DNA of 64,000 nt from Selaginella moellendorffii (GCF_000143415.4 NW_003314265.1:135199-199198); one strand, 5' to 3'; shown: positions 23,872 through 52,821, numbered from the stretch's first letter. Translations and numbers: made by a program. Notes: generated by a model not told the origin, from the sequence alone.

Positions 23872-24090
23872 TGCCCCACAGCATCATGAAACGCTTTCAC
23901 GTTAAAATATATTCCATGGTTATTTTACTGAATACCACAGCGTACAGTAGAAGTAACCAACGTGCTTGATTATGTGTGTTTAATTAAGTTCAAAACACCT
24001 CGAGCACCACGCTAAGTATTTCTTTATGTGCTCCAATTTGAATATAAATAGGCTCCATGGCTCTTGCACAAGCACAGCAAGCGTACAACA

Positions 24091-24806: not shown

Positions 24807-25076
24807 AACCTTTATTGAGGTCTAGTTTAGATTTGAAAGTTACGAGATGGGAGGGAGTTTGATTGATCGAGAGGGAACTGAACTTGTTCCTTCGTGTGCG
24901 AGGATATTGTAAAATTCGTTTCAAGCTAGCCACGACCGCGCAAATATACTGAAACTCCCAAGCTCCAAACCTTCATTTGTTTGCAGAGCTAACTCCACTC
25001 CAGCCGAAGCTGCCCGATGGCACTGCTCTCCTTTTGTAAGAGAGCTCACTTCTCTCCTTTTGTGCATAGGGTTTCC

Positions 25077-26493
25077 ATGGATTACGTGTGGGTGAGGAAG
25101 GATGGAGAAGGCGAGGCGCTGCGCGTTCCTCTCCACGATTCGAAGCATCTGATGGTGGACAGCATTGCGGCACACTGGGGACTGGACGCCGCCACGCTCC
25201 GTGTGGGTCAGACCGCTCTCTTCAAGGACGCGAATGGGAATTCGGTGATGACGGTGGAGCAAATCGCTGCCAATTCCAATGGCCATGGCGATGGCCAGTC
25301 CCAGCAGAATCCCCTCGTCATCACGGGTAACAGGAATCGCCTCTCCCAGGAAGAAGCAGAGGCGGCATTGGCCAAGACGAAACTCGGGATTGGAATTGCG
25401 AGAGCTCGCGAGCAGCGGAAGGAAGCAGATCGCCGCATCGCTATCTCCAAGCTGTGGCATGATGCGCTGTGTAGAGAGTTCTACCACGGATCAGGGATGT
25501 ATGCCTATTCCATGAAAGGCTTGGTTGGCGAGCCTCCGAGTGTGTTGGGAGAGGTGGTCGGCAGATTCGTCGGTACGGTACATGTAGCTCGCAAGACAGA
25601 AGCTCCCAGCGACAAGAACTGCAAGGGAATGGTGGCGCTTATCAGGCCAGATGGAAGCTGCATCACTGCTCTCCAATGCATCGAAGGGATGTTTAGTGGC
25701 AGTGGCAAGGTGGAAGAAAAGGTGATCGTGGTGAGCTTTCCACGCATCAAAGGAGGAGTTTTGTACGAGTGCAAGGTTGGTTCTCGTCTGTCTTCCTCGG
25801 TGGTGTGCCTGGAGCCGCAAGCCCACTGCTTGCAAGAATTTGAAGGGTGCTTGAAAATGGAAGTAATCAGTCTTCCATTGTTCCAGCGACTGTACACGTT
25901 TGGTGGCCACAAGTCTATGGATCTTATCAACGTCTTCTCGGTGGATCCAGAGGCTTTTCTGCCTGTGTCGGCTGTGCAAGACCTAGGTGCCCCCGTGTTT
26001 GCCGATGGAGGAAGCTTGATCGGTGTTGTTACGAACACGTTCCTTGGGAAGCTTGGTAGAGGAGACACGGACAGGAAGCGCAAGCTGCAATCTTTTCAAG
26101 GGCGGCATCTGGAATGCCAAAAGACTGCAGACTTGGACAAGGAGTTTGAGCATGCAAGGCTTTATCGCAATGTCTCGGAAGAGATGCATGACGTCTACTT
26201 ATGTAAGTTTTCTCTTCTATTTTTGTGTTATTGGATTACTACATTCGCTTGCAGGGGCAAAAGCTGCCATCCATCTGAACCGGGTTGTGCAGTTTGCTCC
26301 AGTGACGTGGAAGACACCGATTGATGAATGGAAGGAAGCTCATCCAGTTGAAAGTAAGTAGAAAGTTTACATCTCGAAATCTAATATCTAAATCCATTTT
26401 CTAGGCTTCGAGAAGGATCTCCCTCAAGAGCTTCCAAGCAGGAGATCCAAGACCGGATCAGCTCCTAGAGCAAAAACCTGTGTACTTGTCTAG
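25077..26493 (+). CDS. Trypsin-like pseudo-protease, copy A (putative ubiquitin-like header + helix + trypsin-like domain); 3 exons
   Basis: GSCITALQCI, SSSVVCLE and QDLGAPVFADGGSLIGVV align with the trypsin-2 motifs TxxH, DxAxL and SGGP, but His, Asp and Ser are replaced. Open frame, GT-AG introns near 26203 and 26354, telo-box just before the ATG. Confidence 0.65.
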
Positions 26494-26539
26494 AGAAACA
26501 ACTTAGTCTTCAGAAACAATGCTTATGCTACAAAGTCTA

Positions 26540-26705
26540 AGGCCTTCGTTTTCCAGCCTGCACCCCCTATTTTCCAGTTGCTCCACCACCCCGGAAGCCA
26601 AGAAGCTTCACCTTCTTGAGGCTTCCACAGTTGAGCAGCGGATTTCCAAAGCATTCCATGGAGACGTTCTTGAGGTGGACGAGCTTCATGTTTTGCATGC
26701 AGCCG
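26540..26705 (-). pseudogene. 3' fragment of the F-box/LRR gene (copy of ~40100-40275)
   Basis: GCMQNMKLVHLKNVSMECFGNPLLNCGSLKKVKLL is near-identical to the last exon of the FBL gene, with an internal deletion. Confidence 0.9.
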
Positions 26706-26959
26706 ATGTTCGCACTCGCTTGATGGCACCTTGCTCCTCCATGTGAGATTCTTGGTACCAATCCTACTTCTTGATAGGCAATTATCCTTACACTAAACTT
26801 AAACTTTCAACCACTGTGATTGGAGGACTAGAATTATAATAACATCTGATTTAATTTCAAGATAGGAAGTATTGTCCTATTGTGACTCAAAGTTGTTCAT
26901 TACAAAAGAAAAGTAAGCATTGCTACACTAAGTCTCACTGGAAAACTTGGTCCAGGGCT

Positions 26960-27085
26960 TCGTGCTTGTTGGCTCTTCTTCCTATCCTAAAGGTTTTCTG
27001 GAACTAACCAGTGTCCTACCTAGCTCTGCCAAGTTTTACCAAGTGGACATGCAGCGTTCCAAATGGGCCAACCTCGCCGGGTTTC
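26960..27085 (+). pseudogene. Deletion-riddled 3' fragment of ABCG
   Basis: [15 protein letters not shown] matches [15 protein letters not shown] at ~21955-22000. Confidence 0.85.
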
Positions 27086-27283
27086 TCGTTTCTTCTTGGG
27101 GTAGAAATTCATCGCTGCGCTCTTTCATCTTCGAGACGAAGAAAACCAACTGTAAAGGCTTCAGCTGAAGGGCATAAAGCATAGCATCTGAAGGTGCCTC
27201 TTTTATGTCTCCGTGGGTGGACAGAGTGGGCGGGCGTGGGGCTCTACTCCTCTTTAGGGCATCCAAGCATCCAAGCAGCGGCG

Positions 27284-28729
27284 ATGAGCGCCATGGTCAA
27301 GGGCCCCGCGGCGATGAATGTGGACGAGCAGCAGCATGTCCAGCACGGGCCATCGCTCGTGGAGCAGCTCCAGGTAAGTGAAATCCTAGAATTGTTAAAG
27401 GTTATTGTGTCTGTGTTGATGTCGATCGATCGCGCTTATTCCAGAAATCTCACTGTGGCATTTCCGCGGTGGATGTCAAGAAGCTCCCAGAGGCAGGGTT
27501 TTGTACCGTTGAAGCGGTGGCCTATTCGCCCAAGAAGGAGCTGCTCAAGATCAAAGGCATAAGCGAGGCTAAGGTCGACAAGATCACTGAAGCGGGTATG
27601 GACCTTTTGGTTTTGTTTTGTTTTTATTTTCTTCTCATTGTTCTATGGAACTTGCGTAGCGAAGCGACCAAGCTTGTTCCAATGGGATTTACAAGCGCCG
27701 CACAAATGCACGAGCAGCGATCGGAGATCATCCAACTAACATCGGGGTCCAAAGAACTCGACAAGATCCTCGAGGGGGGCAGAACTGAGATCTATGGAGA
27801 GTTTCGGACTGGAAAGACTCAGTTGTGTCATACGCTTTGTGTAGCATGTCAGGTATGTATCTTCGTTTTGACTTCATGGATCACTGAGTTTTGTGTCTAT
27901 TTCATTAGATCATGGAGGTGGTGAAGGCAAAGCAGATGCTGAAGGCAAAGCAGATGCTGAAGGAACTTTCAGGCCACAGAGATTGTTGCAAATAGAGGTC
28001 GGATCACGTTTTCCTTTTTTTTTCGTGATTTCTTATGATTGTTTCATTTTCTGGATGATAGATATGGGCTGAATGGAGCAGATGTTTTGGACAATATTCC
28101 CTACGCGAAAGCATACAACACTGATCATCAATCACAGCTGCTGTTGGAGGCGGCGTCTATGATGGCTAAATCGAGGTAAGCATTTCCCTTGATATGTTAA
28201 GCACTCTTGGCCTTCTCCTCGCAGGTTTGCCTTTATGGTAGTAGACAGCGCGACTGCTCTGTATCGCACCGATTTTTCGGGACGCGGTGAACTATCTGCC
28301 AGACAAATGTACCTTGCTAGATTCTTAATAAGCCTACAGAAACTGGCAGACGAGGTAAGCTCTCGATCGCTCTCTCGCTTGCCTTAAAATTTTAGAGTAA
28401 CATTTCGCTTCACAGTTTGGAGTGGCGGTGGTCCTGACTAACCAAGTTGTGGCACAAGTCGACGGGTCTGCCGTTTTCGCTGGTCCGCAAGTCAAGCCCA
28501 TCGGGGGCAACATAATCGCCCATGCCTCCACGACAAGGTACACGGGTGTCTGTCACTTCATTCTAGCTCTATTCTCTAAACTAATACTCACTGCTTTCTT
28601 CACAGACTAGCATTGCAGTATGGACGAGGGGAGGAACGGATATGCAAGATCGTTTGCTCGCCATGCTTAGCAGAGCAAGAAGCTCGTTTCCAGATCTCTG
28701 GCAACGGCATCATTGATGTCACAGATTAA
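27284..28729 (+). pseudogene. RAD51: RAD51 pseudogene 1 (intron-containing duplicate)
   Basis: Colinear with 22434-23871. It has lost the intron-1 acceptor, [10 protein letters not shown] is deleted to GGRTE, and exon 4 carries a deletion plus an 18-bp duplication (gaaggcaaagcagatgct x2). Confidence 0.9.
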
Positions 28730-29039
28730 TGCTCCACAGAAAGCTTCATAAGCTGCTAAACGCTTTCACGTTAAAATATATCCGATGGTTATTTTACCGA
28801 ATACAACAGCGTACAGTAGAAGTAACCACTATAACGTGCTTGATTATGTCTGTTTAATTAAGTTCAAAACACGTTACGTATCCTCCAACTCTTTCACGTT
28901 AAAATATATTCCATGGTTATTTTACCGATTAATGAATACAACAGCGTAGAGTAGAAGTACTATAACGTGCTTGATTATGTCAACGTGGTGCTCGAGCACC
29001 ACGCTAAGTATTTGATTATGTGCTCCAATTTGAATATAT

Positions 29040-29560
29040 CCTTCCTCGTTGCTGCAGTATGCATACTATCTGAGAAAGCAGTGACCAATGCACAGTCAGA
29101 GGTTATGCGATGAATTGCTTGATTTCAATGACCAGGTGCGTTGACGATTACAACAGGAAAATGGGGAACTGACGGAACAGTGGACATATCAGTTTCAACA
29201 ACACATCTGGAATTGGCCCACAATTTCTAGATCTGGACAATCCGGGGGATGATTTCAAGCCTCGTACCGATAATAAGTATCATCGACAAGGTCCATGCTT
29301 GAGAAATATCTGTGGTTTCAAGCTCACCCTTAAGGATTTTGGGCCAAGAGAAAGGGAGCCTCGTGGTGCGTTGATTGTTTGTGAGAGCAATGGTGAAGAG
29401 ATATCAAGATATGCATGTAACTTTGGCGAATTTGGAGGATACCTGTTGACTGAGCTGATCGGATGAAAGTCAGATAGTGTGTGGGTGAGTTACTGTGAAC
29501 AGATGGCATGCAAGACAATATGTGAGAATCCCAAGAGAAACTGATGGTATCTTGAGCTCA
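29040..29560 (+). pseudogene. PLAT gene pseudogene (duplicate of 24091-24670)
   Basis: Colinear with the PLAT gene but lacks the start region and carries indels and stops. Confidence 0.85.
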
Positions 29561-32059
29561 AGTGAATAGATTTTTTGCAATCTTAAATAATCATTGTCTG
29601 ATTGAATTTCTAATAAAAGTTCAGCATATGCACCTCACTCACCATGGACTAATGCATAATGCGCTTGCCATTATGCATGAATCCTGGAAGACACCATCTA
29701 TCCACCTGAAACCTTTATTGAAGTCTGGTTTAAATTTGAAGGGAGTATTGATTGAGAGTGAACTGAACTTGTGAGGCTATTGTAAAATTCTTTTCAAGTG
29801 AGCCAGGACTGTGCAAAAATATTGAAACTCCCAGATATGTAAAACATATCAATCACTGAAAAATCAAGCTAAGGATTTTATGTTTCTAAGTCTGTGGGAA
29901 GAGCTAACTCCAGCTGAAGCTTCCCGGTGGTTGGTGCACCCCAATAGCTTAATTTATTATTTTGTTTGCTAAAAATATATCAACTGGATTTTTCTTTCCC
30001 TAAAATCTTTAGTTTATGTGAATTATTTTAACAGTTTTTATTGACTCTAAACGTTTTCACTTGATTTTCTAACTAGAAAATATGGTTATTTATTGCTACT
30101 TTATTAAAACAAATTATAATTTGAACACTAAAGCTTTATTTTGCATGGGATTAGTGTTATATTCATGAACAGGGTCAAATTATTTGTAGATGGGATAATT
30201 GTTTCTAATAGGTGTATGTGAGATTGATTTACTACATGATTTGTGTCAATCAAAAGAAAATTCTAATTTATTGTATAAGTAACTATCAGTATCACTTGCC
30301 AAAGAATTGATCTTGATATGCATAAATATTTCCATTCTTGGTTATTGGCTATCAAAGAACATTGATTTCTAAGTACTTTTTAAATTTAATAGATTTTAAG
30401 AAAAACTAAAGTTTTAAAGATCTTGCTCTATTGGACATCCCATTTACAAATGAAATTATTAATAACATGCATATTCTTAAATGAAGTAAATACTTTCTTT
30501 CTTCAGATTTAATATTTTTATAAAGGTTTATGAATAAAATGGTGTCAATTGAAAAGAAGCTACCTTGAACATACAAAAACATAAGGTGAATAACAAAATC
30601 TAAAATAAGAAAAAATTATGTTTTTTAGAGGCTTTTTAATCAATAAGATTGTTTATTCAAATATTATCATATTTTTAAAAAATTACAGTAACAGTAAATA
30701 AAAAAAACTATAATAATGAAAAAAATGCCATATTTGGCTCTAACAACTTTAAAAAATAATTAAACTTATAATCAATTGAAAAAGAGAAATATCAATCAAA
30801 GGAAGGATGTGGTTAAAAGATATAAATTGATCAATGAAGAATGTAGTCTTTATTTTGAAAAATTTAAATTTAGTTATTGCTACTTTAAACTTTCTTTAAT
30901 TATTTAACTATAAACATAACTATTCATTATCATTAATATAAACTATCCAATTGAAAGTTTAATATAAAGTAATTTTTAAAAAACTATTAACGTCATTGAC
31001 TTTATGGGATCACTATTACCAAATGGTCAAATATTTCAACAAGTTGAAATATTATAATTTAGTGAAAAATTAGACATAATTATTATTTAATTTAAAATCA
31101 CTAGTCATGCTAGCAATATTTATCTTAAAATTATGCATGGTGAAAAGATCATTATACCTAGTAAAAAAAAAATTAATAAGTGCACTTGAGTCGAATGAAT
31201 ATATAAACCAATGTATAAAAAAATTAAATAACTGCATTTAGAGTTATATAAATAAACAAACTAATGTATAAAATAAAATCGTTGCTTTCATTATATATTT
31301 TATTGAAAGCATAATTTACTAGGTATAATTTTGTTTTCTTCTATCTAAAATAAACTCAACAAAAAATAGGTTTTAAAAGTTTGGCAGTTTAAAAACAAGT
31401 AGAATATACTTTTATATTCTTTGTAGAATAGATTTTACGTGAAAATTCTTCAAGAAATGTTATTAAATTTGTGAGGAGTTAAAAAATATTTTAAAAATGG
31501 AGATACCTTTTTTAAATTTTTCTAAAATAAGTATTTTAAAAATTTATAAGTTCATGATAAAGTACTTTTTTTTCTATTATATGCACTTCTACCTTCATTA
31601 AAATAAAAATCTATTTCAATAGTAAGATTATGAAAGTTTTAATTATAACAATATATTCACTAAAAAAGAATGGCTCTAATTTAATTAAAAAGATGGAATG
31701 ACAATTAAATGATAATACACATACATAACATTAATTAAATGAAAAAGGATTATATTTTTTTAGTTATTATTTAGGTTAAACTGATGTTTTGGGAGAATTG
31801 GCTTTTTTTATCAAAAATATATATAAAAGTTCATGTTAAAGGTTTTTAGCAATATTGTGAAGAGATTAAAGCCAAAATATCACTTAATAAGCTAAAAAAG
31901 AAAATATTAAAATGATAATTATCAACTCTATATATTTCTTTTATCTTTGCTTTATATTATTAATCTCTTTTTTATTATTTAAGAAGAACTCCTAAACAGT
32001 CATAGAAAAAATAAAAAGTAGTTAATAGGTTGAAAAATATTATCTCAAAGGTAGGTGTT

Positions 32060-34200
32060 AAGGATTATTACTTATATTTGCATTAAAATGGTTGGATGAG
32101 GCTAAATTTCCACAATTTGCTAAAGTTTGTATCAGGTAAATTTTGACAATTATAAATATGAAAATTTTAAACCTTTAAATAATGGATTACTCACTCTCTT
32201 TTATAAAATGTAGTGTTATGTTTCTTTATATATTCTTTGTAAACTTTAATTAAATATTTATACATTATTTAAAAAATTATATATTTTCATTATATGCTAT
32301 TATGTTATAAGCAATAATCTCAAGAATAATGGGGAAGCTTTATAACTAACTTTAAACTTTAAGGAAGAAAATATATGTATTACATATTTTCCATGTTTTA
32401 ATGTAAAGGGGGATTTGAAACTGTAAGCAATCAAGTTTTATGTAATTCATGAATTTTAAGATCTAGATGTTGCAATTTTACAACTCAAAAGTTTCAATAA
32501 TAAAATATATATGCTACCAATTTTGATTCCTATGTAGAAAAAATTGGGAAAAAATTAAAAATCAGAAGAAAATAACATAAAATTGATCCTCTTATATTCT
32601 AATATAATATTTAAAATCCACGAATTATGATGATACCTCTTCTTGTTTTGATCTTTGCTATCACTAACTCATAAAAAAAAATTATGTTTTTAGTGATTAT
32701 TTGAGTTAAACTAAAATTTTACGAGTATTGATTTTTTATAAAATTTTTTTCAAGATTAGTTATAGGAGTTTATGTTGAAATTTTTTAGCAAAATTCTAGA
32801 GATATTGAATACATATGTATTACATATTTTCCATGTTTTAATGTAAAAGGGGATTTGAAATTGTAAGCATTCAAGTTTTATGTAATTCATGAATTTGAAG
32901 ATCTAGATGTTGCAATTTTACAACTCAAAATTTTCAATAATAAAATATATATGCTACAACCTTTGATTCCTATGTAGAAAAAATTGGGAAAAAGTTAAAA
33001 ATCAGAAGAAAATAACATAAAATTGATCCTCTTATATTTTAATATAATATTGAAAATCCACGAATTATGATGATACCTCTTCTTGTTTTGATCTTTGCTA
33101 TCACTAACTCATAGAAAAAATTATGTTTTTAGTGACTATTTGTGTTAAATTAATATTTTACGAGTATTGATTTTTTATAATTGTTTTTTCAAGATTAGTT
33201 ATAGGAGTTCATGTTGAAATTTTTTAGCAAAATTTTAAAGATATTGAATACATATGTATTACATATTTTCCATGTTTTAATGTAAAAGGGGATTTGAAAT
33301 TGTAAGCATTCAAGTTTTATGTAATTCATGAATTTGAAGATCTAGATGTTGCAATTTTACAACTCAAAAGTTTCAATAATAAAATATATATGCTACCAAT
33401 TTTGATTCCTATATAGAAAAAATTGGGAAAAAGTTAAAAATCATAAGAAAATAACATAAAATTGATCCTCTTATATTCTAATATAATATTTAAAATCCAC
33501 GAATTATGATGATACCTCTTCTTGTTTTGATCTTTGCTATCACTAACTCATAAAAAAAAATTATGTTTTTAGTGATTATTTGAGTTAACCTAAAATTTTA
33601 CGAGTATTGATTTTTTTTAAATTTTTTTTCAAAATTAGTTATAGGAGTTCATGTTGAAATTTTTTAGCAAAATTCTAGAGATATTGAAGACATATGTATT
33701 ACATATTTTCCATGTTATAATGTAAAAGGGGATTTGAAATTGTAAGCATTCAAGTTTTATGTAGTTCAGAAATTTGAAGATCTAGATGTTGCAATTTTAC
33801 AACTCAAAAGTTTCAATAATAAAATATATATGCTACCAATTTTGATTTCTATATAGAAAAAATTGGGAAAAAGTTAAAAATCAGAAGAAAATAACATAAA
33901 ATTGATCCTCTTATATTTTAATATAATATTAAAAATCCATGAATTATGATGATACCTTTTCTTGTTTTGATCTTTGCTATCACTAACTCATAAAAAAAAT
34001 TATGTTTTTAGTGACTATTTGTGTTAAATTAATATTTTACGAGTATTGATTTTTTATAAAAAAAATTTCAAGATTAGTTATAGGAGTTCATGTTGAAATT
34101 TTTTAGCAAAATTCTCTAGATATTGAAGCTAGAATATCTTGATATACCCAATGATCTAAAAAAGATAACATTAAAATGATAAAGCTGAAGAGAATAAATG
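32060..34200 (+). pseudogene. AT-decayed copy of the trypsin-like protease gene with its Asp/Ser-encoding half amplified four times
   Basis: From ~32075: LLLIFALKWLDEAKFPQFAKVCIR*ILT (intact gene LLYVRPLGWSEEAVPQHARCCVGRILT). Repeat unit: TYFPCFNVKG...AFKFYVIHEFEDLDVAILQLKSFNNKIYMLPI (intact AYFPCYNSAG...AFRFHVVKEDADLDVAILYLEGCNNTVYMQPI). From ~34125: LKLEYLDIPNDL (intact LKPEFLDVPDNL). Confidence 0.85.
32371..34130. repeat. Tandem array, 4 x ~440 bp
   Basis: tacatattttccatg recurs at 32381, 32821, 33260 and 33700; a more diverged unit starts at ~35362. Confidence 0.95.
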
Positions 34201-34209
34201 CATAATATA

Positions 34210-34535
34210 ACGCTCCCCTCTTTTATATGTTTACCCCCTTTGTTATAGCCACTACTCACTCCCTTTGTATTATAGTTGGTTTTCTTTTAGAATAGAGAGA
34301 ATGTAAAAGATGTCAGTGACCGATGAAATATTAACTTGATAATTGAGGTTGTAAAGATGGTTTAAAGTAAAACTATAAACATTGTAATATCACAAGATCT
34401 TTTAGAACTAGCACTTAGTTTGTACATAGTAATTTCAGATTTACTCAAATACTTTAATTGATGTATTGTTAGTGTATTAAAATGCCAGAAGATGAAGCCC
34501 ATATTGAGTATAATATTAAAAGTGAGAACACATAT
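34210..34535 (+). mobile_element. Partial second copy of the Merlin-like element (5' region and N-terminal Zn-finger part)
   Basis: Homologous to ~37705-37780 plus ~38025-38280; reads CKDGLK*NYKHCNITRSFRTST*FVHSNF. Confidence 0.6.
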
Positions 34536-34849
34536 GAAAGTAAAATTTTTATTGACTATTGGCTAAAATGTTTAACTCTTCTAGTATTGTGATTTTATGC
34601 TTTGAGTGAATATGTACTAAAATGAGATGAAATGAATTGCATGACTTTTCCAAAATTGGTGTTTTCTTCCTTTCTAGATCTTATGGTACACAATGGCACA
34701 TAGGGGATATATTTTCGTAGTGGAGTCACCAATTAATATAAAGAGACTTTGATAAAAATAAAGAGTAAAATAATGTATGGGGAAATAAAAGGGGTGAAAA
34801 AATAGATTAGGGAAACATTTTTTACATTTTTTTTATGACATAAATAAGA

Positions 34850-35870
34850 AGTTGAGTGTTGTAATACATGATATTTTCAATGTAGTAGAGGAAAATCATC
34901 TTTATGGGGTTAATATTCATCTTCATCATGAGAATAAATAGTAAAAATAGCAGTGATGGAGACTTTTATTTTTTATTTTTTGCATTACTAATAAAAACTT
35001 TATAAAGTGAAAACTACAATAATAAAGGCTTGAGGGGAAAATTTATTACCTTCACTAAGAATACATAACAGATAATCACGAATAGCAATAGAAATGATAA
35101 GAGTAACAATATAGTAAAACTGTGAAAAATAAAGTGTAAAACAAAGTAAAGAAAAACTTTTTTCATTTGGTCATCAATTATATGGATAACCAAAAATATA
35201 CCTTATTAATTGGGAATTTTCTTATTCACTTATTTTAGATTAAAGTTTTTTACCTTATCACTCTTTATGTCTTTTTTTTTTTAGTTTGCATTGTTAATCT
35301 CTCTTTTGCTTATTCAAGGAAAACACTAAACAGTTATTAAAGGATAGGTTTTGAAAGTTATTACATATTTTCCATGCTTTAATGTAAAGAGGGATTTGTA
35401 ACTGCGAGCATTCAAATTTTATGTAATTTATGAATTTGAAGATTTAGATGTTGCAATTTTGCAGTTTAAAGGTTGCAACAATAGAGCATATATGTTGCTA
35501 CTTTCGACTCTTATACTGGAAAAATTAGAAAAAAAGAAAAAATTACAAGAAAGTAACATAAAATTTATCCATTTTTCAATTTTAAGTTTAAGTTTCATTT
35601 TTTCTCAAACTTATAGACATCACATTTTAGTATAACACTAAAAATTTATGAGTTATGATAATAATTTATTTTGTTTTGACCTTTGCTATCACTAACTCGG
35701 GAGGAAGATTATGTTTTTTGGTGACTAATTTAGCTAAACCAACATTTTGTGAGCATTAAAATTTTTTTTAAGACTATTTATAAGGGTTTATGTTAAATTT
35801 TTTTTAGCAATATTGTAGAGAGCTCTCTAATTTTTTAGAGAGCTTGAAGTCTTTGCTCCAATGATATATA
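34850..35870 (+). pseudogene. Further decayed trypsin-like protease copy; another fragment at ~31740-31940
   Basis: From ~35360: TYFPCFNVKRDL*LRAFKFYVIYEFEDLDVAILQFKGCNNRAYML. The fragment at ~31850 reads SNIVKRLKPKY (intact GNIAERLKPEF). Boundaries approximate. Confidence 0.75.
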
Positions 35871-36982: not shown

Positions 36983-37680
36983 TTGATCTTGGTTGGAGTG
37001 GCATTTAACTTTGGGAAGCTCATGCCTAAGACAATTAAAATGTTAAGAGAGTGGCAATGTGATCCAAGGCTTGGGAAGATCACCATGCTTGGCCAATCAT
37101 TTGCTCGTTCCAAGGACTATAGTGCAACTAAGGTACAAACTTGGTTCACATCCACATATAATATTGCATGATTAAATCAATGTGATCAACAGCAAGTTAA
37201 TATCATTTTTCTCCTTATCTTCTTCTAGGTTCCTAGCCCTCCTCATAGGTGATACTGATTTCACTCGAGAGCAAATCAACAATAAAGTCGCCAAGTGAAG
37301 GTTTAGGTTCAAGAAGGTATATATGCGAGACATCAAGTGCTTCTCATTCCTTAACCGAGTGCTAGAGAATGAAATGACCCCCATCCTCATTATCACCATA
37401 AGGGCATCATGAAGAACTACAAATTGTCACAACATCCCACTCAATCTTCCAAACTTACTACTTATAATCTTGATGTAATCTTACATAAAGGACAAGATGC
37501 AATGGATTTTGGACATTCAGGTGGGTGGAGATGGCTTGCCAAAGAGCAGCTCACCAAGATTAGGGAGGAGACTTCACTTAGTGGCCTTGGCTTACCAAAA
37601 GTGAAGAGGAAAGCATTAAGGACATCAACAAAGTCTACTCACTTTTCATGGATATGAAGCGATTGACACAATTCTTAGGT
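36983..37680 (+). pseudogene. Inverted, decayed copy of RUVBL2
   Basis: [26 protein letters not shown] and DIKCFSFLNRVLENEMTPILI match 45474-46932. An intron remnant is kept (aacagcaagttaatatc...), so this is a DNA-level duplicate. Confidence 0.88.
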
Positions 37681-37704
37681 TTAAGAGTACAAATGCACAA
37701 TCTA

Positions 37705-38760: not shown

Positions 38761-39072
38761 AATAAATATTGAAAGGAAGAAACTACAATATTCTAAGCTA
38801 TATAATCAGAATAATGTTGTCATAGTAAAATAAAAATTCTATGGGAATCCAAATAAGCAAAAAGGGCCTGCATTCTACCTGGTTCAAAAAAACCTTGACA
38901 TCAGCAAACAAAGGATCTGCCCTTGCCCGAACCTCCTGCTGTGTTTCTAGGAAATCCAGCTCTATAGATTGCGCATGGGAACTCGGCTATGGACAGTGCA
39001 CTGATGCAGCAAGCCGGGATGAGGAGACATTTCGCAAAGATAGATTTTAGGGTAGACTCACTGTTTAGTACA

Positions 39073-40010
39073 AGGTGGAAGAAGCGTGGAGCTTTCCACG
39101 CATCAAAGGAGGAGTTTTCTACGAGTGCAAGGTTGGTGCTCGTCTGTCTTCCTCGGTGGTGTGCCTGGAGCCGCAAGCCCACTGCTTGCAAGCATTTCAA
39201 GGGTGCTTGAAAATGGAAGTAATCACTCTTCCATTGTTCCAGCGACTGTACACGTTTGGTGGCCACAAGTCTATGGATCTTACCAACGTCTTCTCGGTGG
39301 ATCCAGAGGCTTTTCTGCCTGCGTCGGCTGTGCAAGACCTCGGTGCTCCCGTGTTTGCCGATGGAGGAAGCTTGATTGGTGTTACAAACACGATCTATCT
39401 CATTCTAAGAAACCGTAAGTGAAAGCTTACTTCCAGATTGATCCCAACGAGGATGTGCTGCTTGTGCTTCTTTTGTCGGCAACCATAAGCATGTCCGTGT
39501 CCGATATGCTCGGTAAAACCATTCCTTCGTGGATGACGACGAGTAAACGAGTGATAGTCTCAGAAGAAGAACAAGATCATTGGGAAGCTTGGTAGAGGAG
39601 ACACGGACAGGAAGCGCAAGCTGGAATCTTTTCAAGGGCGGCATCTGGAATGCCAAAAGACTGCAGACTTGGACAAGGAGTTTGAGCACGCAAGACTTTA
39701 TCGCAATGCCTCGGAAGATCCTCTTCTATTTTTGTGTTATTGGATTACTACATTCACTTGCAGGGGCAAAAGCTGCCATCCATCTGAACCGGGTTGTGCA
39801 GTTTGCTCCAGTGACGTGGAAGACACTGATTGATGAATGGAAGGAAGCTCATCCAGTTGAAAGTAAGTAGAAAGTTTACATCTGGAAATCTAACATCTAT
39901 ATCTCTTTTCTAGGCTTTGAGAAGGATCTCCCTCAAGAGTTTCCAAGCAGGAGATCCAAGACCGGATCAGCTCCTAGAAGATCAGCTCCTAGAGCTGTAC
40001 TTGTCTAGAG
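39073..40010 (+). pseudogene. 5'-truncated pseudo-protease copy B, with a ~190-bp foreign insert at 39394-39579
   Basis: Near-identical to ~25705-26500 on both sides of the insert; lacks the N-terminus and the first splice donor. Confidence 0.88.
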
Positions 40011-40079
40011 AAACAATGCTTGTCTACTCTGATGCTCCAAAAACTAAGGCCTTTGTTTTCTTTTACTTAGTCACAGGTC

Positions 40080-42423
40080 CTATGAATCTGGCTTGTCCAT
40101 GCATCGCAGCCTGCACCCCCTATTTTCCAGTTGCTCCACCACCCCCGCAGCCAAGGACTGCTTGACATAGGAAAGAAGCTTCACCTTCTTGAGGCTTCCA
40201 CAGTTGAGCAGCGCGTTTCCAAAGCATTCCATGGAGACGTTCTTGAGGTGGACGAGCTTCATGTTTTGCATGCAGCCGAGCTTGGCGAGCGCCATCATCC
40301 CGTTGTTCGTGAGCGGGCAGTAGGACACATTGATCTGGAAGAACGAAACAAAGCTGAGAACTCGAAGAACTAAAGAGATCAACCTGTCGCAGGTCCGGAC
40401 ACAAGTGTTCTAGCGCAAGAAGTCCGGGATCGCCTATTCTCGTGCAGCGTTTGATGTCTAGCTCTACGAGCCGCTTGCATCCCGCCGCGACTTGCGTGAG
40501 GCCGTCGGAAGTGACGAGTGTGCATCCTCGAATCTCTAGCTGGCTGAGCTTGCTGAGGCGAGCTATGGCTGTCATGGACGCGTCCGAGATTCGAGAGCAG
40601 TAGGACAAGTTCAGTACTCTCAGATCCTGGCAGCCGTTGACGACCGAGATCACTCCGGCATCTCCGACAGATCGACACCTGCGCGAGATCAAATTAATCT
40701 CTTTACAAGTAAAAACTTAAGAGAGAGAACCTGTAGAGATCAAGCTCCATAAGCTTGTGACAACCAGCTCCAACGAAGAAAATCCCATAGTCGGAGATGT
40801 TACAAAATGCCAGCTTCAAGACCCTGAGAAGGACACAATTTCCAATCGGCTCAAGCCCTGGAAAAAAGAAGATAAAAAGAAACCACGCGAGTTAAAAACA
40901 AGGAAGAACCACCGGTATGAGAAAACTCACCAGCACCTGTAAGATTGCAATCTGTGACATCGAGTTCCTCGAGAAGATGGCAGCTCTCGAAAACCATAGG
41001 AAGGCTGTTGTCGGTGACCATGAGGGACGACTCCAGCTTGAGGCTCTTGATGGAGGTGCTGCTCCTGGCGATAGACAGGAGCGAGATTTCAGTGACGTCG
41101 AAGCAGCAAGTAAGGTCGAGCTTCTTCAGGAATTTACATGACGTGATAAGTCGATCGATGCGCTTGTCCGTCACCCCTCGGCTTTTGCACAGGCTGAGCT
41201 CCTTGAGTTCTTGGCATCCCGCCGCGACGCGATCGAGCGAGTCGTGCGTAAATTCGCAGCCATCCAGCCGCAGCGTTTGTATGCCGTTCGGTTTCTCAAA
41301 GTCGAGGAAAGCGTCTTCAGTTACCTGGAACGAAGGTAAGAGTTTTGTCTCGCATTTATCTCAGAAAGAATCGGGAAAGAAGAGCAAGAACCTGAGAGCA
41401 ATGGCAGAGATGTAAGGTGAGCAACGTTGGCAATGCTGCAATCCCAACAGAGCTCACGTTTTGACAACGAGACACGTCCAAATCCTTCACACACCGAAAT
41501 GAAATCACCAAAGAGGAATATTGTGCTATAGTCTTACCACAAGAGACTTGCAGTTCTCCTGCAGATACGAAAGAGCTCTATCTCCAACATTGTTGCAGCC
41601 CATGAGATTTAGAGTTCTCAGTGCCTTGAGCTCCGAAACATACTTAACACCTTCGTCCGTTACCTGCAAAAGCAGAGACACTTAGCTAGCACCCTGAAGA
41701 AATGATAGCTTTACAGTACAAAAGCTACTCGAAAGAAAATAAAAAAAGAACGAACAAAAAAAGACATGCCACTACCTCAGTGAAGGAAAGATCAAGGATC
41801 ATTAGCTCCTCGCTGCGAGCAGCGACGAGCTTAATGCCAGCATCAGTGATCGCCACACAGCCTTTGAGGACGAGAGTTTTCAGCCTGTGACATCCTGCTG
41901 CTAAGCTCTCCAATCCCATGTCTGTGACTCTAATGCAGCCAGTGAGCTTAAGCTTTTCTATCCGGTTGAGCCGAGCTAAGCCGAGAAGTCCATCGTCTTC
42001 CACATAAGAACAATAGCTAAGATCCATCTCTACGAGCGAGAGGCAGTGTTGAGATAAGTAGCGCAGGCCAGTGCTCGTGAACCCACAGATCCTGTTAAGA
42101 TAGATGGCTGCCAGCCGCTTCCCAGCTTTATCCGCGACATGGATGAGATTCTCATCCGTGACACCGGCGCAGCACGTCAAGTCGAGCTCCTCCAAGCGCT
42201 CGTATCGATCGAGAGCTTGGGGGAGGAGCTCGGCCCGGAGAAGCTGGAGCCGCCTGCGCACACTACACTCCAATTTGTAGAAAGTTCTACAGACCATCCG
42301 CCAGCTCCTCCGGTCGAAACTGTCGGAGATCTTTCCCAGGACCTCGAGCAGAATGTGCTCGTCGACGAAATCGAGCAGGCAAGCGCTGGGTCTCCGCGAT
42401 CCTGACGAGCTGCTGCAAGCCAT
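40080..42423 (-). CDS. F-box/LRR-repeat protein (FBL3-like), multi-exon
   Basis: F-box-like DEHILLEVLGKISDSFDRRSWRMVCRTF followed by many cysteine-containing LRRs (L.L..C..VTD.GL). Confidence 0.93.
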
Positions 42424-43183: not shown

Positions 43184-45282
43184 ATGGAAATTCACGACGA
43201 GGAGAGAGTGGTGCACTGCTCCTCCATGGATCCAAATGACGTCGACGAGCTCCATCCAAAGGAAGAGAACGACGAGTTCAACGACGAGGAGGTCGCGCAG
43301 TGCGGCAGCAAAGTCGCGCTCTCGGCTCGCAAGCGCGCTCCGTGCACTGCATGGACGGACAAGGAGGCGTTTGCGCTGCTCGACATCTACTACGAGAAGT
43401 GGATCGAGACGAGGAGTGGTGGCTGCACCGGGCTGAGCGATCGCGAGTGGGCCGAGGTTGGCGAGTCGCTCTACCGGCGCTGCGGTGGCACGCTGCGCAC
43501 CGTGCTGCAGCTCAAGAGCAAGATCGACAAGATGAAGCGGAAGTTTAAGAACGAGCAGCTCAAGGCGAGCACCACAGGGATGGGGAATTCTACGTGGGTG
43601 TTCTACGAGAAGATGAGCAGCTTGTTTGGGCTCATGAAGAAGAAGCGAACGACTCCTTTCTTGAAGAGAGCCGCGGATCGAGAGCTGAGCGGAGACGAGC
43701 AGGCCTGCGATGTGGAGGATCTGGAGAGAGTTGGAGGTGGCGTGGTTGCTCTTGGCGATGTTCCTCAGGATGGTGGCTCGGATTCGCTATATAGGCTGCT
43801 CAAACATCATCTTCCACCGGGTGTTTTCAAGGTAAAAAAGAGTTTTGTTCTTCTTTATTGTTTCTCCGTTTTGTCAGATGATAACACTGATCCTAGGAAG
43901 CAAGCAGGATGATCTTGGGATTAAACAATGGGAGTGTCGTAGGAATGCTGCCTTTGCCTCCAGCAGTAATGGCAATGTCTACTGCTGCCGACTTTGACCT
44001 CCAGGTACTTATTTATTTTCTTTTTCAAAGTTTTTCTAGACCAACTTTTATGTGGGTCTTCTTTGAAGGCTTACAGGTTTACTGCTGCCGAGGAAGAGTT
44101 GCGAGCTCCTCGTATTGTTCGTATAGGCGTCATCCAGAACGCCATAGTTCTCCCAACTGATGCTCCTTTTGCGGATCAGAAGCGAGCCATCATGAAGAGA
44201 GTCGGGGATCTGATCGAAGCTGCTGGAACTGCCGGTGTCAACATACTTTGCTTGCAGGTGAAGGGAAGCTTTTTGCATTTTCCATCTCAACACCCATCTT
44301 TCTTCTTTTCTCGATGTAGGAGGCTTGGACGATGCCTTTCGCGTTTTGTACGCGGGAGAAAACATGGTGCGAGTTTGCCGAGAGCGCGGAGGAAGGCACG
44401 TCGACGAAGTTCTTGCAAATGTTCGCTTGCAAGTTTAAGATGGTGATCATCAGCCCCATCCTGGAGCGCGACGAAGTCCACGGTGGAACCTTGTGGAACA
44501 CGGCCGTGGTGATTGGAAACAATGGAAACGTGATTGGAAAGCACAGAAAGGTCAGGCTCTTTCTCTGTTCTCTCTCGTCTCTGAAAATCCTCCTCCATTT
44601 GCTAGAACCATATCCCTCGCGTTGGAGACTTCAACGAGAGCACGTACTACATGGAAGGCAATACGGGCCATCCAGTGTTTGAGACCGCGTATGGAAAGAT
44701 CGCGGTAAACATATGCTACGGGAGGCACCACACTCTCAACTGGCAGGCGTTTGGGATGAACGGAGCGGAGATCGTGTTTAATCCCTCGGCAACAGTGGGT
44801 GACTTGAGCGAGCCAATGTGGCCGATCGAGGTAAGCACGAAAAAACTCTTTTTTCCCTTCATCGCAATCAAAAATCTCTGTTGGATCATCCATCCATTGT
44901 CCAGGCGAGAAACGCTGCAATAGCAAACAGCTACTTCGTGGCCGCGATCAACCGGGTTGGCACCGAGGTTTTCCCGCGAGCTTTCACGTCGGGTGACGGG
45001 AAGCCGGCTCACAAGGGGTTTGGACACTTTTACGGGTCGAGCTATGTGGCGGCCCCGGACTCTTCGTGCACGCCGAGCCTCTCGAGGCTCCAGGACGGGC
45101 TCATGGTCGTGGATGCCGACTTGAATCTGTGCCAGCAAGTCCGAGACAAATGGGGCTTCCGGATGACCGCTCGCTATGATCTGTATGCCAACTTTTTCAA
45201 TGAGTATACAAAGCACGCGTTCAAACCGCAAGTTATCAGCGATCCCCTCCTCCACTCGGGCCTCGAGGCACACAGCCTCTAA
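43184..45282 (+). CDS. PYD3: Chimeric trihelix (Myb/SANT-like) DNA-binding domain fused to beta-ureidopropionase (nitrilase superfamily)
   Basis: Exon 1 (43184-43831) runs without a stop from [17 protein letters not shown]...W.EV...[17 protein letters not shown] into [13 protein letters not shown], the start of PYD3. Later exons carry [32 protein letters not shown] and NICYGRHH (Glu-Lys-Cys triad). Confidence 0.85.
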
Positions 45283-45473
45283 GATCAAATCAAATAAAAC
45301 ATCTTCAAATTATCTAAAAACGTTTCTCAAAGATATCATTTTTAATCCCTTGCAAACAAAACCAATGTAGAAAAGCTATACTTCAAATGATCTAAAGCTT
45401 TTCTCATTTCTAATCCTTCGCAAACAAAACCAACGTAGAAAAGCTGCGTCGCAGGTGTCGCAAAATTTGATTT

Positions 45474-46980
<1,507 letters not shown>

Positions 46981-47301
46981 TTATAAGGAAAAATAAAAAA
47001 TATATAAAGCTTTACTCACTTTTAAATGAATGAGCCGAGCCTTAGCAGTGACCAAATGGCAATTTTTTTCCATTGCACTTCCAAAGAGCCATAAACCTAC
47101 TAATGTAGCTTCCAGGATTTTAGTTCTTACCCAAATAGAACTTACTTTGTCTCTATGCAACCATCTTAAGGACATATATATATAATAAGTATTTAAATTA
47201 TCTAACATTAAGAAGGTCGAAAAATTATAATAATATATTGCATGTTACATGCAATAACACATGATTTGCTGTATAATAGTGTTATTAGGGGGGCTCTTTC
47301 C

Positions 47302-48708
47302 ATGGATTGCGTCTGGGTGACGAAGGATGGAGAAGGCGAGGCGCTGCGCGTTCCTCTCCACGATTCGAAGCATCTGATGGTGGACAGCATTGCGGCACAC
47401 TGGGGACTGGATGCCGCCACACTCCGTATAGGTCAGATCGCTCTCTTCAAGGACGCGAATGGGAATTCAGTGATGACGATGGAGCAAATCGCTCCCGATC
47501 CCAATGGCGATGGAGATGGCCAGTCCCAGCAGAGTCCCTTCGTCATCACGGGTAAGAGGAATCGGCCCTCCGAGGAAGAAGCAGAGGCGGCATTGGCCAA
47601 GACGAAGCTCGGGATTGGAATTGCGAGAGCTCGCGAGCAGCGGAAGAGAGCAGATCACCTCATCGCTCTCTCCAAGCTGTGCCAGAAAGCGCTGTTCAAA
47701 GAGTTTTATGATGGATCAAGGATGTATTCGTACTCGATCAAAGACTTGGTTGGCAACCCGAGTGTCTTGCGAGAGGAAGTGGCCAATTTCGTCGGGACAG
47801 TACACATAACCAGCAAGGCAGAAGCTTCCAGCGTCAAGAATTGCAAGGGAATGGTGACACTTATCAGGCCAGATGGAAGCTGTATCACAGCTCTTCGATG
47901 CATCGACGAGATCCTTTGTGGTGGTCGCAAGGCAGAAGGAAAGGCGATCGTGGTGAGCTTTCCACGCATCAAAGGAGGAGTTTCCTATGAGTGCAAGGTT
48001 GGTACTCGCCTTTCATCCTCGGTCGTGTGCCTGGAGCCGCAAGCCCATTGCTTACAAGCTTTGGAAGGGTGTTTGAACATGGAAGCTGGCAATCTTCCGT
48101 TCGAGCGGCTGTACACGTTCGGCAGTCATGAGCTTATGAATCTTGTCAACGTCTTCTCCATCGATCCAGAAGCTTTTCTACCTGCGTCGGCTGTGCAAGA
48201 CACAGGTGCTCCCGTGTTTGACGATGGTGGGATCTTGGCTGGCGTTGTCACGAATACGTTCCTTGGGAGGCTTGGTAGAGGAGACACAGACAGGAAGCGC
48301 AAGCTGCAATCTTTTCATGGCAGACATCTTCAATGTCAAAAGACTGCAGATCTGGACAAGGTGTTTCACAGAGCAAAACTCCATTCTAATGCCTCGGAAT
48401 GCATGCGTGAAGTCTTCCTATGTAAGATTTTCTCTCCCTTGCGCACTAAACCCTAAACGCACTTGCAGGCAAACAAGCTGCCATCCATCTGAACCGAGTC
48501 GTCCAGTTTGCTCCAGTGACCTGGAAGACACCCATTGATGAATGGAACGAGGCTCATCCCCTCGAAAGTGAGTAAATCTTAAAATGTGACATCTAAACCT
48601 CTTTTTCTTTTTCTTTCAGGTTTTGAGAAAGATCTCCCTCAAGATCCTCCTGCTTCTCAAGAACCTCCGAGGAGGAAGAACAGATCAGCACCAAGAAAAT
48701 TAATATAG
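47302..48708 (+). CDS. Trypsin-like pseudo-protease, copy C (intact paralog of copy A)
   Basis: Same 3-exon structure and open frame as copy A; CITALRCI, SSSVVCLE and QDTGAPVF at the triad positions. Confidence 0.65.
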
Positions 48709-48918
48709 AGCAAGATATTACCTGGATATTCAGGAAATATTCCTTACAGTATTTAGATCTTCTAAAATATTAACGGTTTTAAAAGAGTGAAAGAAAAATG
48801 TGTGGACTATAACCCGTAAATGAAACTGATAGCTACCTTGAAAAATGAGTATAAATAAGATATATCACTATTGGGAATAAAGAAACCAAAGAAAATTAAA
48901 CATTACTCAAAACTCGTG

Positions 48919-49320
48919 GCTTCATGCTCGTAGCCTGGTTCTTCAACAGGTTTTCTGGAAGTCCCCGGTTTCCTACCTCAGCCTCCATATGTTCTCAAAA
49001 CGAGTTCTAGAGCGGTGGTTTCTCGAACAAGTTCCCTGCTCTGCCAGCGATTCCCGGCCGCCTCATCCTGTCCAAGTTCTACCAGGTGGACATGCGGCGC
49101 TCAAAATGGGCCAACATCGCCGTGGTTTCAGCATGATCGTCATCTATAGGCTCTTCGCGCCGGCGAAGATCTGTGGCCGCGAGCCAGGAGACTCACTACC
49201 AGTCGCGCCTCTCTCTGGAGGATCAAGGCCATGGATCTCGTCACGAAGATCTCGGAGATGCGGCGAAAGAGCAGCTCAATTGCTCACAAATCGAGCAGCG
49301 ATGAATTTCTATCCCCGCCA
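48919..49320 (+). pseudogene. 3' fragment of ABCG
   Basis: Colinear with ~21760-22215, with several small deletions; [26 protein letters not shown]. Confidence 0.88.
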
Positions 49321-49384
49321 AGAAGCAGCAACGGTAAGGGCTGCGGGGTATATTCCCTACGCACGTGGAAGGGCCAATGCGGCG

Positions 49385-50650
49385 ATGAGCGCCATGGACA
49401 AGGGCGCTGCGGCGATGAATGTACGAGCAGCCGGATGTCCAGCACGGGCCATCGCTCGTGGAGCAGCTCCAGGTAAGTGTCGACCGATCGATCGGGCGGC
49501 GCTTATTCCAGAAATCTCCCTGTGTGCAGCACTGTGGCCTTTCCGCGGTGGATATCAAGAAGCTTCGAGAGGCAGAGTTTTGTACCGTCGAAGCGGTGGC
49601 CTATTCGCCCAAGAAGGAGCTGCTCAAGATCAAAGGCATAAGCGAGGCTAAGGTCGACAAGATCACTGAAGCGGGTATGTACATTTTGGTTTTGTTTTGT
49701 TTTTTTCTCATTGTTCTATGGAACTTGCGTAGCTACCAAGCTTGTTCCGATGGGATTCACAAGTGCGGCACAAATGCATGAGCAGCGATCCGAGATCATC
49801 CAAATAACATCGGGGTCCAAGAACTCGATAAGATCCTGGAAGGGGGCATTGAGACCGGCTCCATAACTGAGATGTATGGAGAGTTTCGGACTGGAAAGAC
49901 TCAGCTGTATCACACGCTTTGTGTAACATGTCAGGTATGTATCTTCTTCATTTTGACTTCACGGATCACTGAGTTTTGTGTCTATGTAAAAGCTGCCATT
50001 AGATCAAGGAGGCGGTGAAGACAAAGCACTGTACATGATGCCGAAGGAACTTTCAGGCCACAGAGATTGTTGCAAGTCGCCGAGAGGTTGGATCACGCTT
50101 TTCTTTCTTTTTCGTGATCTCGTATGATCGTTTGCTTTGCATTTGCATGGGCTGAAGCAGATGTTTTGGTATTGCCTAGGCGAGAGCATACAACACTGAT
50201 CATCAATCACATGAATCGAGGTAACCATTTTCCTTGATATGTTAAGCACTCCTCGCAGGTTTGTCTTGATGAGAGGCGACTGCTCTGTATCTGGCCGATT
50301 TTTCGACCTCTGCTACGTTCTTAAGAAGCCTACAGAAACTGGCAGACGAGGTAAGCTCTCGATTTCGTTTGCCTTCAAAATCTAGAGTAACATTTCGCTT
50401 TGCAGTTTGGAGTGGTGGTGGTCCTGTCTTGCTGTGGCACAAGTCGACGGGTCTGCCGTTGCAAGTGCAACATAATCGCCCATGCCTCCACAACAAGGTA
50501 CACGGTTGTGTCTCACTTCATTCTAGCTCTATTCTCTACTAGCATTATGCAAGGGACAGCGGATATACAAGATCGTTTGCTCGTCATGCTTAGCACAGCA
50601 AGAAGCTCGTTTCCAGATCGCTGGCGGCATCATTTGATGTCACAGATTAA
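49385..50650 (+). pseudogene. RAD51: RAD51 pseudogene 2
   Basis: Colinear with RAD51, with a frameshift in exon 1 (gtggac to gtac) and many deletions in the 3' exons. Confidence 0.92.
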
Positions 50651-50879
50651 TGCGAGCGAGTTAGCATACTCTTTTTTCTTTTCTCCGTAGTTTTCTTAAG
50701 ATCAAGCACGGTCAGTGCGTCCTGGAGATCGGGTCCTTGCGGAGATAAAAGCAGTTGATTGAGTGGGGTCTCGGACAGAGATCTTTAAAAGTCTAATCCT
50801 CTATCCTTTAATAAAACAAAGTTAAAAGCGCTAGGGTTTTAAGTTGCCGTTCTTTCAAAACTAGGGGCTTTGCTTGTCA

Positions 50880-52821
50880 ATGGCGCCGAAAGGGAGATCG
50901 GCCGCTTCATCCACGCCAAGCGCAGCAGCAGAATCAGAAGCATCGGAGCCAATAGCGCCGGCTGGAGAAATAGCAGCCGTGGCAAGAGGGGGGGAAGAAA
51001 GGAGAAAAATGGCGACTTCCAAGGAAGCCGGGGGATCGCGGCAAGTACCAGCAGGCCGTGGAAGCTCTTCTTCGGTGCCGGGAAAAAGTGGGGCGTCAGC
51101 TCCATCATCTGGCCGAGCGGTAGGCGCGGCAATGACCGGCAAAGTGGAAAAATCACCTTCTCTGGGAGGGGGAATGGCAGCGGCAACGACCGCAGGGGAA
51201 AAATCGACTTCTTTGCGGCGTCAAGGAACAGCCTCGTCTTCTCCACGAGCGGGAATGGAAGTGGCAGTGCCTGGAAGGGAAAAGGCGTCTTCTTTGCGGG
51301 GTCAAGCAGCTCCGTCTTCTCCAGGAGCGGGAATGGTGTCCAGAGGGGAAAATCCGTCTTCTTTGGAGGATCAAGGAGGAGTTTCATCTTCACCAGGATC
51401 GTCACCAGCAACGGCAGAAGCAACAGGAGCAGCACAAGAACAGGGGCGTGGAAAAGGAGTAGCAGCAGAACAGGGCCATGGAAAATCGTCTTCTTTGGGG
51501 GATCAAGGAGGAGTTTCATCTTCACCAGGATCGTCACCAGCAACGGCAAAAGCAACAGGAGCAGCACAAGAACAGGGGCGTGGAAAAGGAGTAGCAGCAG
51601 AACAGGGCCATGGAAAATCGTCTTCTGTGCCGGCATCATCTCCTTCGTCTGGCTATGGTCGACAGGCAGAATCGTCAAGGGCTGGAGTGGGAGGAGGTAG
51701 AGCTTCTTCATCTGGACGATATGGAGAATCATCAAGGGCTGGAGCAGGACGAGGGAGAGCTTCTTCGTCTGGCAGACATGGTGTTGGAGGGCAAGGTCGG
51801 GGAAAGCTATTGTATGTCCGCCCGTTAGGATGGTCAGAAGAAGCAGTTCCTCAACACGCTCGCTGCTGTGTCGGAAGAATCTTGACTATGAGAAGTGAGG
51901 TGGACCTTAAGAGCCTTCAATCCAAAGACTCCCGACTCTCTTGGATCAACTCTAGTGGTATGTTTTGGTTTGGTTTGGCTTTTATGATATTTACATTTGT
52001 TAATTAAAGGGATTTGTGCCTTATTTGCAAAAGGATACGCTGTTACAGTTCGACATTGTGTTACCGATGAGGATACCGATGAGGATCACAACACTGAGGG
52101 GGGGCAACAAGTTTCAAACGAAAGGGTCGAAAAAGCAGTTTCAAACAATGAAGAAGAGGTTTGGGTTGCTTATTTCCCTTGTTATAATTCGGCTGGGAAA
52201 CCACGTGCTAGAGCTTTTAGATTTCACGTTGTTAAAGAAGATGCAGATTTAGATGTGGCCATCTTATACCTTGAAGGTTGCAACAACACAGTTTACATGC
52301 AGCCAATCACAAATCTCATGCAAGACCAATTACTTGGCAAGAAGGTAAGGAAAAAAGCTATTTGGTAGAATTGATCTCTTTACTAACCTCCAGTTTACAA
52401 GGTTCACATCGCATCGTTCCTCCACCTTGTTGACTTGTCGTTCCAGCAGAATGGCGAAGATGCACTGCTCATCACAATTCCTCCGTTTATTTCATCGTTC
52501 GTTATCGCCAGTCCAAGCGCAGGATTTACTTTCCTCGGAGATTATTTTTGCCAGGCTAACGCATCCGGAGCGCCGATTTTCTTTTGCGATGGGATGGACT
52601 GCTGGTTGGTAGGTGTCCACACAGATAACTTTTATGGAAATATTGCAGAGAGATTGAAGCCCGAATTCCTGGACGTACCAGACAATCTACAAGATAGAAC
52701 ATCAAAATGCCAGCTTCTGTATCCTTGGATAGTGGATAAGGTGAAGTGTTCCAGAGAGCTTGGAGTCTTTGCTCCAATAAAACGAGTGATCGCAAAGACA
52801 GGATTTCGTCTGCTCCAATAA
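50880..52821 (+). CDS. Trypsin-like serine protease with a long Gly/Ser/Ala-rich N-terminus; introns ~51958-52009 and 52345-52401
   Basis: His motif YAVTVRHCV, Asp motif DADLDVAILYL, Ser motif NASGAPIF...LVGVH. No signal peptide seen; telo-box at 50832. Confidence 0.72.
51348..51625 (+). repeat. In-frame 132-bp (44 aa) tandem repeat in the protease N-terminus
   Basis: SSL(E/G)DQGGVSSSPGSSPATA(E/K)ATGAAQEQGRGKGVAAEQGHGK occurs twice. Confidence 0.92.

Follow-up and report, generated by a model that had tools for sequence, protein, structure and literature searches.

Genes of the locus and their expression

A 64,000-nucleotide stretch of the Selaginella moellendorffii genome (GCF_000143415.4 NW_003314265.1:135199-199198, hereafter the window, whose numbering is used unless stated otherwise) carries a cluster of protease-like genes between positions 25077 and 52821, all on the plus strand. 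The cluster comprises two paralogous genes, A (25077-26493) and C (47302-48708), which code for proteins of 437 and 435 aa with a predicted ubiquitin-like (Ubl) head and a trypsin-fold domain devoid of catalytic residues; a truncated and disrupted copy of the same type, B (39072-40279); and gene P (50880-52821), an orphan trypsin-like gene with its His, Asp and Ser motifs. An earlier note on this DNA had proposed that the active protease and its dead relatives may form a module of Crinkler-like layout. The reading that we consider probable is instead that A and C belong to a family of dead proteases confined to spikemoss, that P is a separate gene, and that segmental duplication has clustered them without making a two-gene module.

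Gene A was delimited by its open reading frame (ORF) and splice sites, with exons at 25077-26202, 26255-26353 and 26405-26493. Gene C has exons at 47302-48421, 48469-48567 and 48620-48708, and its translation is exactly that of SELMODRAFT_405463 (P0002). The queries for searches and folding were the database proteins P0002 (for C) and P0004 (for P of the other haplotype) and single exons, exons being joined solely in the coordinate check of C against P0002. A and C share 83% identity in DNA and 77% in protein. Gene A is 97% identical to LOC9633158 and matches the hidden Markov model (HMM) of the family at E 1e-147. The public LOC9633158 model (24057-26493) fuses the first exon of an ATS3-like gene to A and looks wrong.

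Scaffold GL377574.1 (L001) is collinear with window positions 39611-62697 at about 97% identity and therefore represents the other haplotype. Transcript contigs from four runs of four studies, with depths of 15-147, were spliced as modelled for C, both introns being removed at GT..AG sites (joints 48421/48469 and 48567/48620), and 16 of 16 checked variant letters matched the allele of the other haplotype. C is therefore a transcribed and spliced gene.

The ratio of nonsynonymous to synonymous divergence (dN/dS, Nei-Gojobori) was 0.39 between A and C and 0.41 between C and its allele, which indicates that the two genes are under purifying selection, somewhat relaxed. This result fits the earlier view of A and C as genes kept intact. 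Synonymous divergence between A and C (25077-26201 compared with 47302-48420) was 0.11 over the first 90 codons and 0.43-0.60 further on, and this roughly fourfold lower value at the 5' end suggests gene conversion there.

Copy B, which the earlier note had placed at 39073 as a truncated third copy, was confirmed by tblastn and alignment. Its two segments (39072-39401 and 39570-39830) align with residues 211-323 and 320-415 of A; the first ~210 codons are missing, about 170 bp have been inserted and the first donor site is gone.

Predicted fold of the A/C proteins and loss of the catalytic residues

Sequence searches of Pfam, NCBIfam, PADLOC and PDB with the A/C protein returned nothing significant, and no signal peptide was found in the ~435-aa protein. 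Structure was predicted with AlphaFold2 from a 16-sequence family alignment, giving a predicted local distance difference test (pLDDT) score of 62.8 for the whole chain and of about 80 for the head and the first barrel; an earlier alignment of 4 sequences had given a pLDDT of 32. Residues ~147-401 of the model matched PA-clan proteases in four structure searches. Foldseek against PDB retrieved MucD, HtrA, Deg5 and DegS with E-values of 3e-6 to 1e-4, and 248 matches in all at E<=1e-3. VIA-align gave Z scores of 11.6 to MamO, the top structural match, and of 11.5 to HtrA3; the alignments covered 160-175 residues (163-172 at Z 11.5). A wide search independent of Foldseek returned PA-clan chains in all of its top 50 places, the pseudo-proteases HGF, protein Z and SMIPP-S-D1 among them, and the shape search of the ESM Atlas led to S1 peptidases. 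The language-model neighbours of A/C were Trypsin_2 clusters at 0.94. These results support the prediction that A and C carry a double beta-barrel of the PA clan (trypsin/HtrA-like), as the earlier note had supposed.

The catalytic His, Asp and Ser were found at the motif-equivalent columns in none of the 16 family members, in agreement with the earlier description of A and C as intact paralogues lacking all three residues. In A and C the equivalent residues are R or Q for His, S for Asp and T or L for Ser; across the family, R, Q, G, K, V or A stands at the His position, T, L, R, P, V or C at the Ser position, and no Asp at the Asp position. Remnants of the motifs are kept as TAxxC for TAAHC and xG[AG]PV for GDSGGP. 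As every known member lacks His, Asp and Ser, the loss of the triad is, on this alignment, old and earlier than the split of all known lineages, with a non-catalytic job probably retained.

The first 85 residues of A/C were predicted to fold as beta-beta-alpha-beta-beta-alpha-beta with pLDDT 72-83. A profile of this head gave no match against PDB sequences; its nearest feature neighbours were TDP-43_N, Ubiquitin_GT-1 (the GT-1 Ubl), PB1 and CIDE-N, all of them beta-grasp domains, and they also included two clusters from Mucoromycota. The model and these neighbours support a beta-grasp-like (ubiquitin-like) head. The predicted layout thus starts with the head (residues 1-85) and continues with a long helix (~91-136), the barrel (from ~150) and then a C-terminal motif conserved in the family, FAPxxWKxPxxEWxxxHPLExF, the C-terminus being helical in the model.

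Distribution of the family and the Crinkler-type alternative

A word search with A/C among 5.8 billion proteins found only two spikemoss clusters. An exhaustive HMMER search over 1.84 billion representatives gave 10 matches, nine of which are uncharacterised S. moellendorffii proteins encoded on different scaffolds and 28-37% identical. The single match from outside spikemoss, P0011, is a 2306-aa protein of a Dehalococcoidia metagenome-assembled genome, with ten repeats that weakly resemble residues 3-40 of C (overall E 4e-8). P0011 carries DUF4232 and MG4 Ig-like repeats and was rejected as a true relative, the match being probably due to chance in an Ig-like repeat protein. Within these searches, the A/C family is seen only in S. 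moellendorffii, in at least seven divergent lineages on different scaffolds. The literature search retrieved no paper naming genes of the family.

Six other family loci were inspected, together with their 10-kb flanks. A single family gene stands among ordinary genes at every one of them except L007, where there are two decayed ones. These two fragmentary copies lie in tandem at 8439-10815 of L007 (scaffold GL377631.1), and local duplication and decay of the family are therefore not unique to the window.

The earlier note had likened the proteins to the Crinkler/RHS-type (CR) class. On that reading A/C would be a plant branch of it: a Ubl header, a trypsin-type effector domain and transposon-like spread. 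The order of domains, a Ubl-like head and then a trypsin fold, agrees with this reading, as do the two Mucoromycota clusters among the neighbours of the head. So does a review (PMC5289972) that credits Zhang et al. 2016 with the detection of CR proteins in land plants and counts trypsin peptidase domains among the C-termini of the class. However, no Pfam model, including Crinkler and Trypsin_2 (PF13365), matched any of the 16 members at E<=1; the LxLFLAK motif of strand 3 is absent, the consensus there being xALxxDxxGNS; the best feature neighbours of the head are TDP-43_N and not Crinkler; the would-be effector domain has lost its catalytic residues in every member; and the members are single genes at ordinary loci. 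We therefore regard membership of the CR class as unlikely and retain of it a likeness of layout only.

Gene P

Gene P has exons at 50880-51957, 52010-52344 and 52402-52821, separated by GT..AG introns, and the join of exons 2 and 3 is borne out by the other-haplotype protein P0004. Its motifs occur in the expected order, TVRHC (His), DLDVAIL (Asp) and NASGAP (Ser), so that the earlier statement that P keeps its triad motifs holds. The stretch around His aligns with TAGHC of crayfish trypsin 2f91; two residues ahead of Ser, Asn replaces the usual Gly. Of the 144 positions of the Pfam model Trypsin_2, 1-135 aligned with P (E 0.0012), and with 20.0 bits P misses the gathering cut-off of 27.6. 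In the word search of 5.8 billion proteins P found its own two alleles only and no close paralogue. By its motifs, P is a separate orphan trypsin-like gene.

Two public models of P look wrong: SELMODRAFT_408953 (L001 10001-12310) fuses a RAD51 copy to it, and SELMODRAFT_405465 replaces the exon bearing Ser by a short alternative end. A perfect 41-bp x2 tandem duplication (52770-52849) lies across the stop codon of P, and the transcript contigs of the minus-strand neighbour omit one copy of it.

The 5' end of P lies in a 960-bp low-complexity block rich in S and G (50866-51825, plus strand), which is missing from the otherwise collinear L001 scaffold. The block contains an internal 132-bp x2.1 repeat and three long ORFs overlapping in different frames, and both the annotated start codon and the first ~320 codons of P fall inside it. 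Since the homology of a decayed P copy at 32083 begins exactly at 51825, this stretch has the look of a later insertion. P of the other haplotype retains a Met 40 residues before the His.

No transcript contigs of P were found over 50940-52366 in the four runs expressing C, the sole contig inside P being unspliced, 174 nt long and of depth 3. P might thus be dying or might never have been functional, in which case the whole cluster except A and C would be duplication debris, and the intact triad of P a leftover of recent origin. The lack of transcript contigs, the start codon within a haplotype-specific low-complexity block with several phases open, the presence of at least three decayed copies nearby, the sub-threshold Trypsin_2 match and the unusual Asn would all fit such a gene. 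On the other hand, exon 3 shows 6 synonymous and 0 nonsynonymous differences between alleles, exon 2 has a dN/dS of 0.25 between haplotypes, neither haplotype shows damage to the frame or to either intron, and the Met of the other haplotype suffices for a minimal domain. We consider a dying P a possibility that deserves attention, although not the likelier state of the gene.

Relation of P to the A/C family

The earlier note had proposed that an active protease and a dead decoy, inhibitor or antidote may make up one module. C (and A) with P would then be a functional pair of defence type or of a selfish kind, an active cytosolic protease with a dead paralogue acting as inhibitor, decoy, adaptor or antidote. 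In both haplotypes, C and P share a strand and are separated by 2.2 kb; broken copy B is found in the same older block as decayed copies of P; P and the family have a weak but ordered similarity of motifs; and both C and P show purifying selection between alleles. However, tblastn and phmmer searches with P found nothing credible within 10 kb on either side of the six other family loci. Moreover, P has no close paralogue in the word search, no P contigs occur in the runs where C reaches depths of up to 147, a transcribed RAD51 copy stands between C and P, and the family is catalytically dead across lineages of 28-37% identity that are scattered as single genes among housekeeping genes. We accordingly hold such a pair to be improbable. 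Two marginal P-like matches at another family locus, L006 (E 7e-4 and 0.013), failed on inspection.

In profile comparisons with hhalign, A/C gave weak motif-level matches to P (E 0.0036 and 0.019), which are consistent with homology of P and A/C at the level of the clan and do not prove close kinship.

A more specific form of the pairing would have P expressed conditionally, for example upon infection or stress, as a cytosolic protease with the Ubl-headed dead paralogues as its dedicated regulators or decoys. We give this very little credence; if true, plants would have here an immune or addiction pair of their own, made of a protease and a pseudo-protease and evolving by local birth and death.

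Several observations weigh against reading the cluster as a dead-protease family with a separate neighbour. The A/C model is of middling confidence, with a pLDDT below 50 in the second barrel and the C-terminus; the column equivalent to Asp depends on the alignment; and the Ubl fold of the head is drawn from the whole-protein model and feature neighbours. The allelic record of exon 3 argues that P is functional, and contigs are evidence of presence, so that unsampled tissues or conditions may yet express P. The co-location test took in six loci with 10 kb on each side, the adjacency of C and P is kept in both haplotypes, and P and A/C share slightly more than generic motifs (GAPxF...GxLxGVxTxxFxG). 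Set against the evidence above, these points leave a spikemoss family of dead proteases and a separate P, clustered by duplication, as the probable reading.

Segmental duplication and decay in the window

Self-comparison of the window showed that A, C and B were copied within a larger block that also holds the 3' end of an ABCG gene, a RAD51 gene and an ATS3-like ORF. Upstream of A, the block at 21808-24960 (plus strand) was resolved by self-BLAST, ORFs and Pfam into the ABCG 3' end, RAD51 (22417-23998) and an ATS3/PLAT-like ORF (24057-24806), with Pfam matches to HHH_5, Rad51 and ATS3. A degenerate second block at 26947-29833 (plus strand) has an ABCG 3' fragment, a RAD51 pseudogene (27267-28872) and an ATS3-like part. 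Between C and P, at 48948-50653 (plus strand), lie a third ABCG 3' fragment and a third RAD51 copy (49379-50653). Transcripts of this RAD51 copy, from which five GT..AG introns are spliced out, stop near 50830, some 50 bp short of the annotated ATG of P. An intact TIP49/RuvB-like gene is located at 45474-46932, and an inverted decayed fragment of this gene at 37315-37674 in AT-rich DNA.

GC content drops to 21-26% in two parts of the window, 4-8 kb and 30-38 kb, and these AT-rich blocks are crowded with decayed gene fragments. The decayed P copies that the earlier note had listed at about 4.0, 31.8, 32.1 and 35.3 kb were confirmed with some refinements. The first, at 4067-4189 (minus strand), spans the junction of intron 1 with exon 2. 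The copy at 32083-34178 (plus strand) begins with P homology (32083-32521) leading into a tandem array of a 440-bp unit repeated 4.0 times with 94% matches (32373-34127), each unit with a P exon-2 fragment, and ends in a piece of exon 3 (34096-34178) that has a look-alike at 31753-31918. In this array a gene piece has become a small satellite. A second fragment, at 35359-35821 (plus strand), runs from exon 2 to early exon 3.

The decayed pieces differ from P chiefly by GC-to-AT changes with no dinucleotide context. Decay of the kind caused by repeat-induced point mutation was ruled out for the AT-rich copies, since the GC-to-AT bias lacks such a context and the genome is that of a plant.

The birth and decay of copies that the earlier note had seen in this region were thus borne out, whereas a spread specific to a module or like that of transposons was not, as duplication has equally copied RAD51, the ABCG 3' end, the ATS3-like gene and a TIP49 fragment. 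From these comparisons, the window is a duplication-prone region rather than a unit travelling as protease plus pseudo-protease. A, B, C, P and the debris would have been clustered by repeated segmental duplication of a block of about 5 kb carrying also RAD51, the ABCG 3' end and the ATS3-like gene, older copies of which would have decayed into AT-rich DNA.

Comparison with known proteins and significance

To judge by the predicted structure, the closest known kind to the A/C family is the PA-clan pseudo-protease, such as MamO. MamO, the beta-chain of HGF, protein Z and the scabies-mite SMIPPs resemble A/C in having a double barrel of the trypsin/HtrA type, lost catalytic residues and a non-catalytic role; MamO has been described as a repurposed protease (PMC4794232). 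Unlike these proteins, A/C have no detectable sequence relationship to them, look cytosolic, have a long helix behind a Ubl-like head, and occur in one plant lineage.

The best-scoring active proteases by fold were those of the HtrA/DegP/DegS/Deg group (S1C), including the plant proteins Deg1, Deg5 and Deg8, from which A/C differ in lacking a PDZ domain (no Pfam match), the triad, a targeting peptide and any match to the Trypsin_2 HMM. FAM111A and FAM111B, like A/C, are intracellular and combine one or more ubiquitin-like domains with a following Trypsin_2-type domain, and a FAM111A-like cluster was a feature neighbour of A/C at 0.90. FAM111 proteins are animal proteins with two ubiquitin-like domains and a triad that is always intact (PMC9798293), whereas A/C have a single head domain and a triad that is dead, and match neither the FAM111_N nor the Trypsin_2 HMM. 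CR proteins with trypsin C-termini also share with A/C a Ubl header and a C-terminal domain of trypsin fold; they differ in that A/C have no Crinkler HMM match, LxLFLAK motif or link to transposons, and in that the enzyme domain of A/C is dead.

The A/C protein would thus have been retained for a non-catalytic job, most likely to bind peptides or proteins in what was once the substrate cleft, and its head and helix may engage partners or promote self-assembly, which has parallels in other pseudo-proteases.

In this region, three public gene models thus look wrong (LOC9633158, SELMODRAFT_408953 and SELMODRAFT_405465). Binding or regulatory proteins have repeatedly been built from pseudo-enzymes that retain the fold of a protease. 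With at least seven branches in a single lineage, expression, selective maintenance, a predicted Ubl head and no Pfam model, the A/C family would be well suited to the question of what ligand a dead HtrA-like barrel has in the plant cell.

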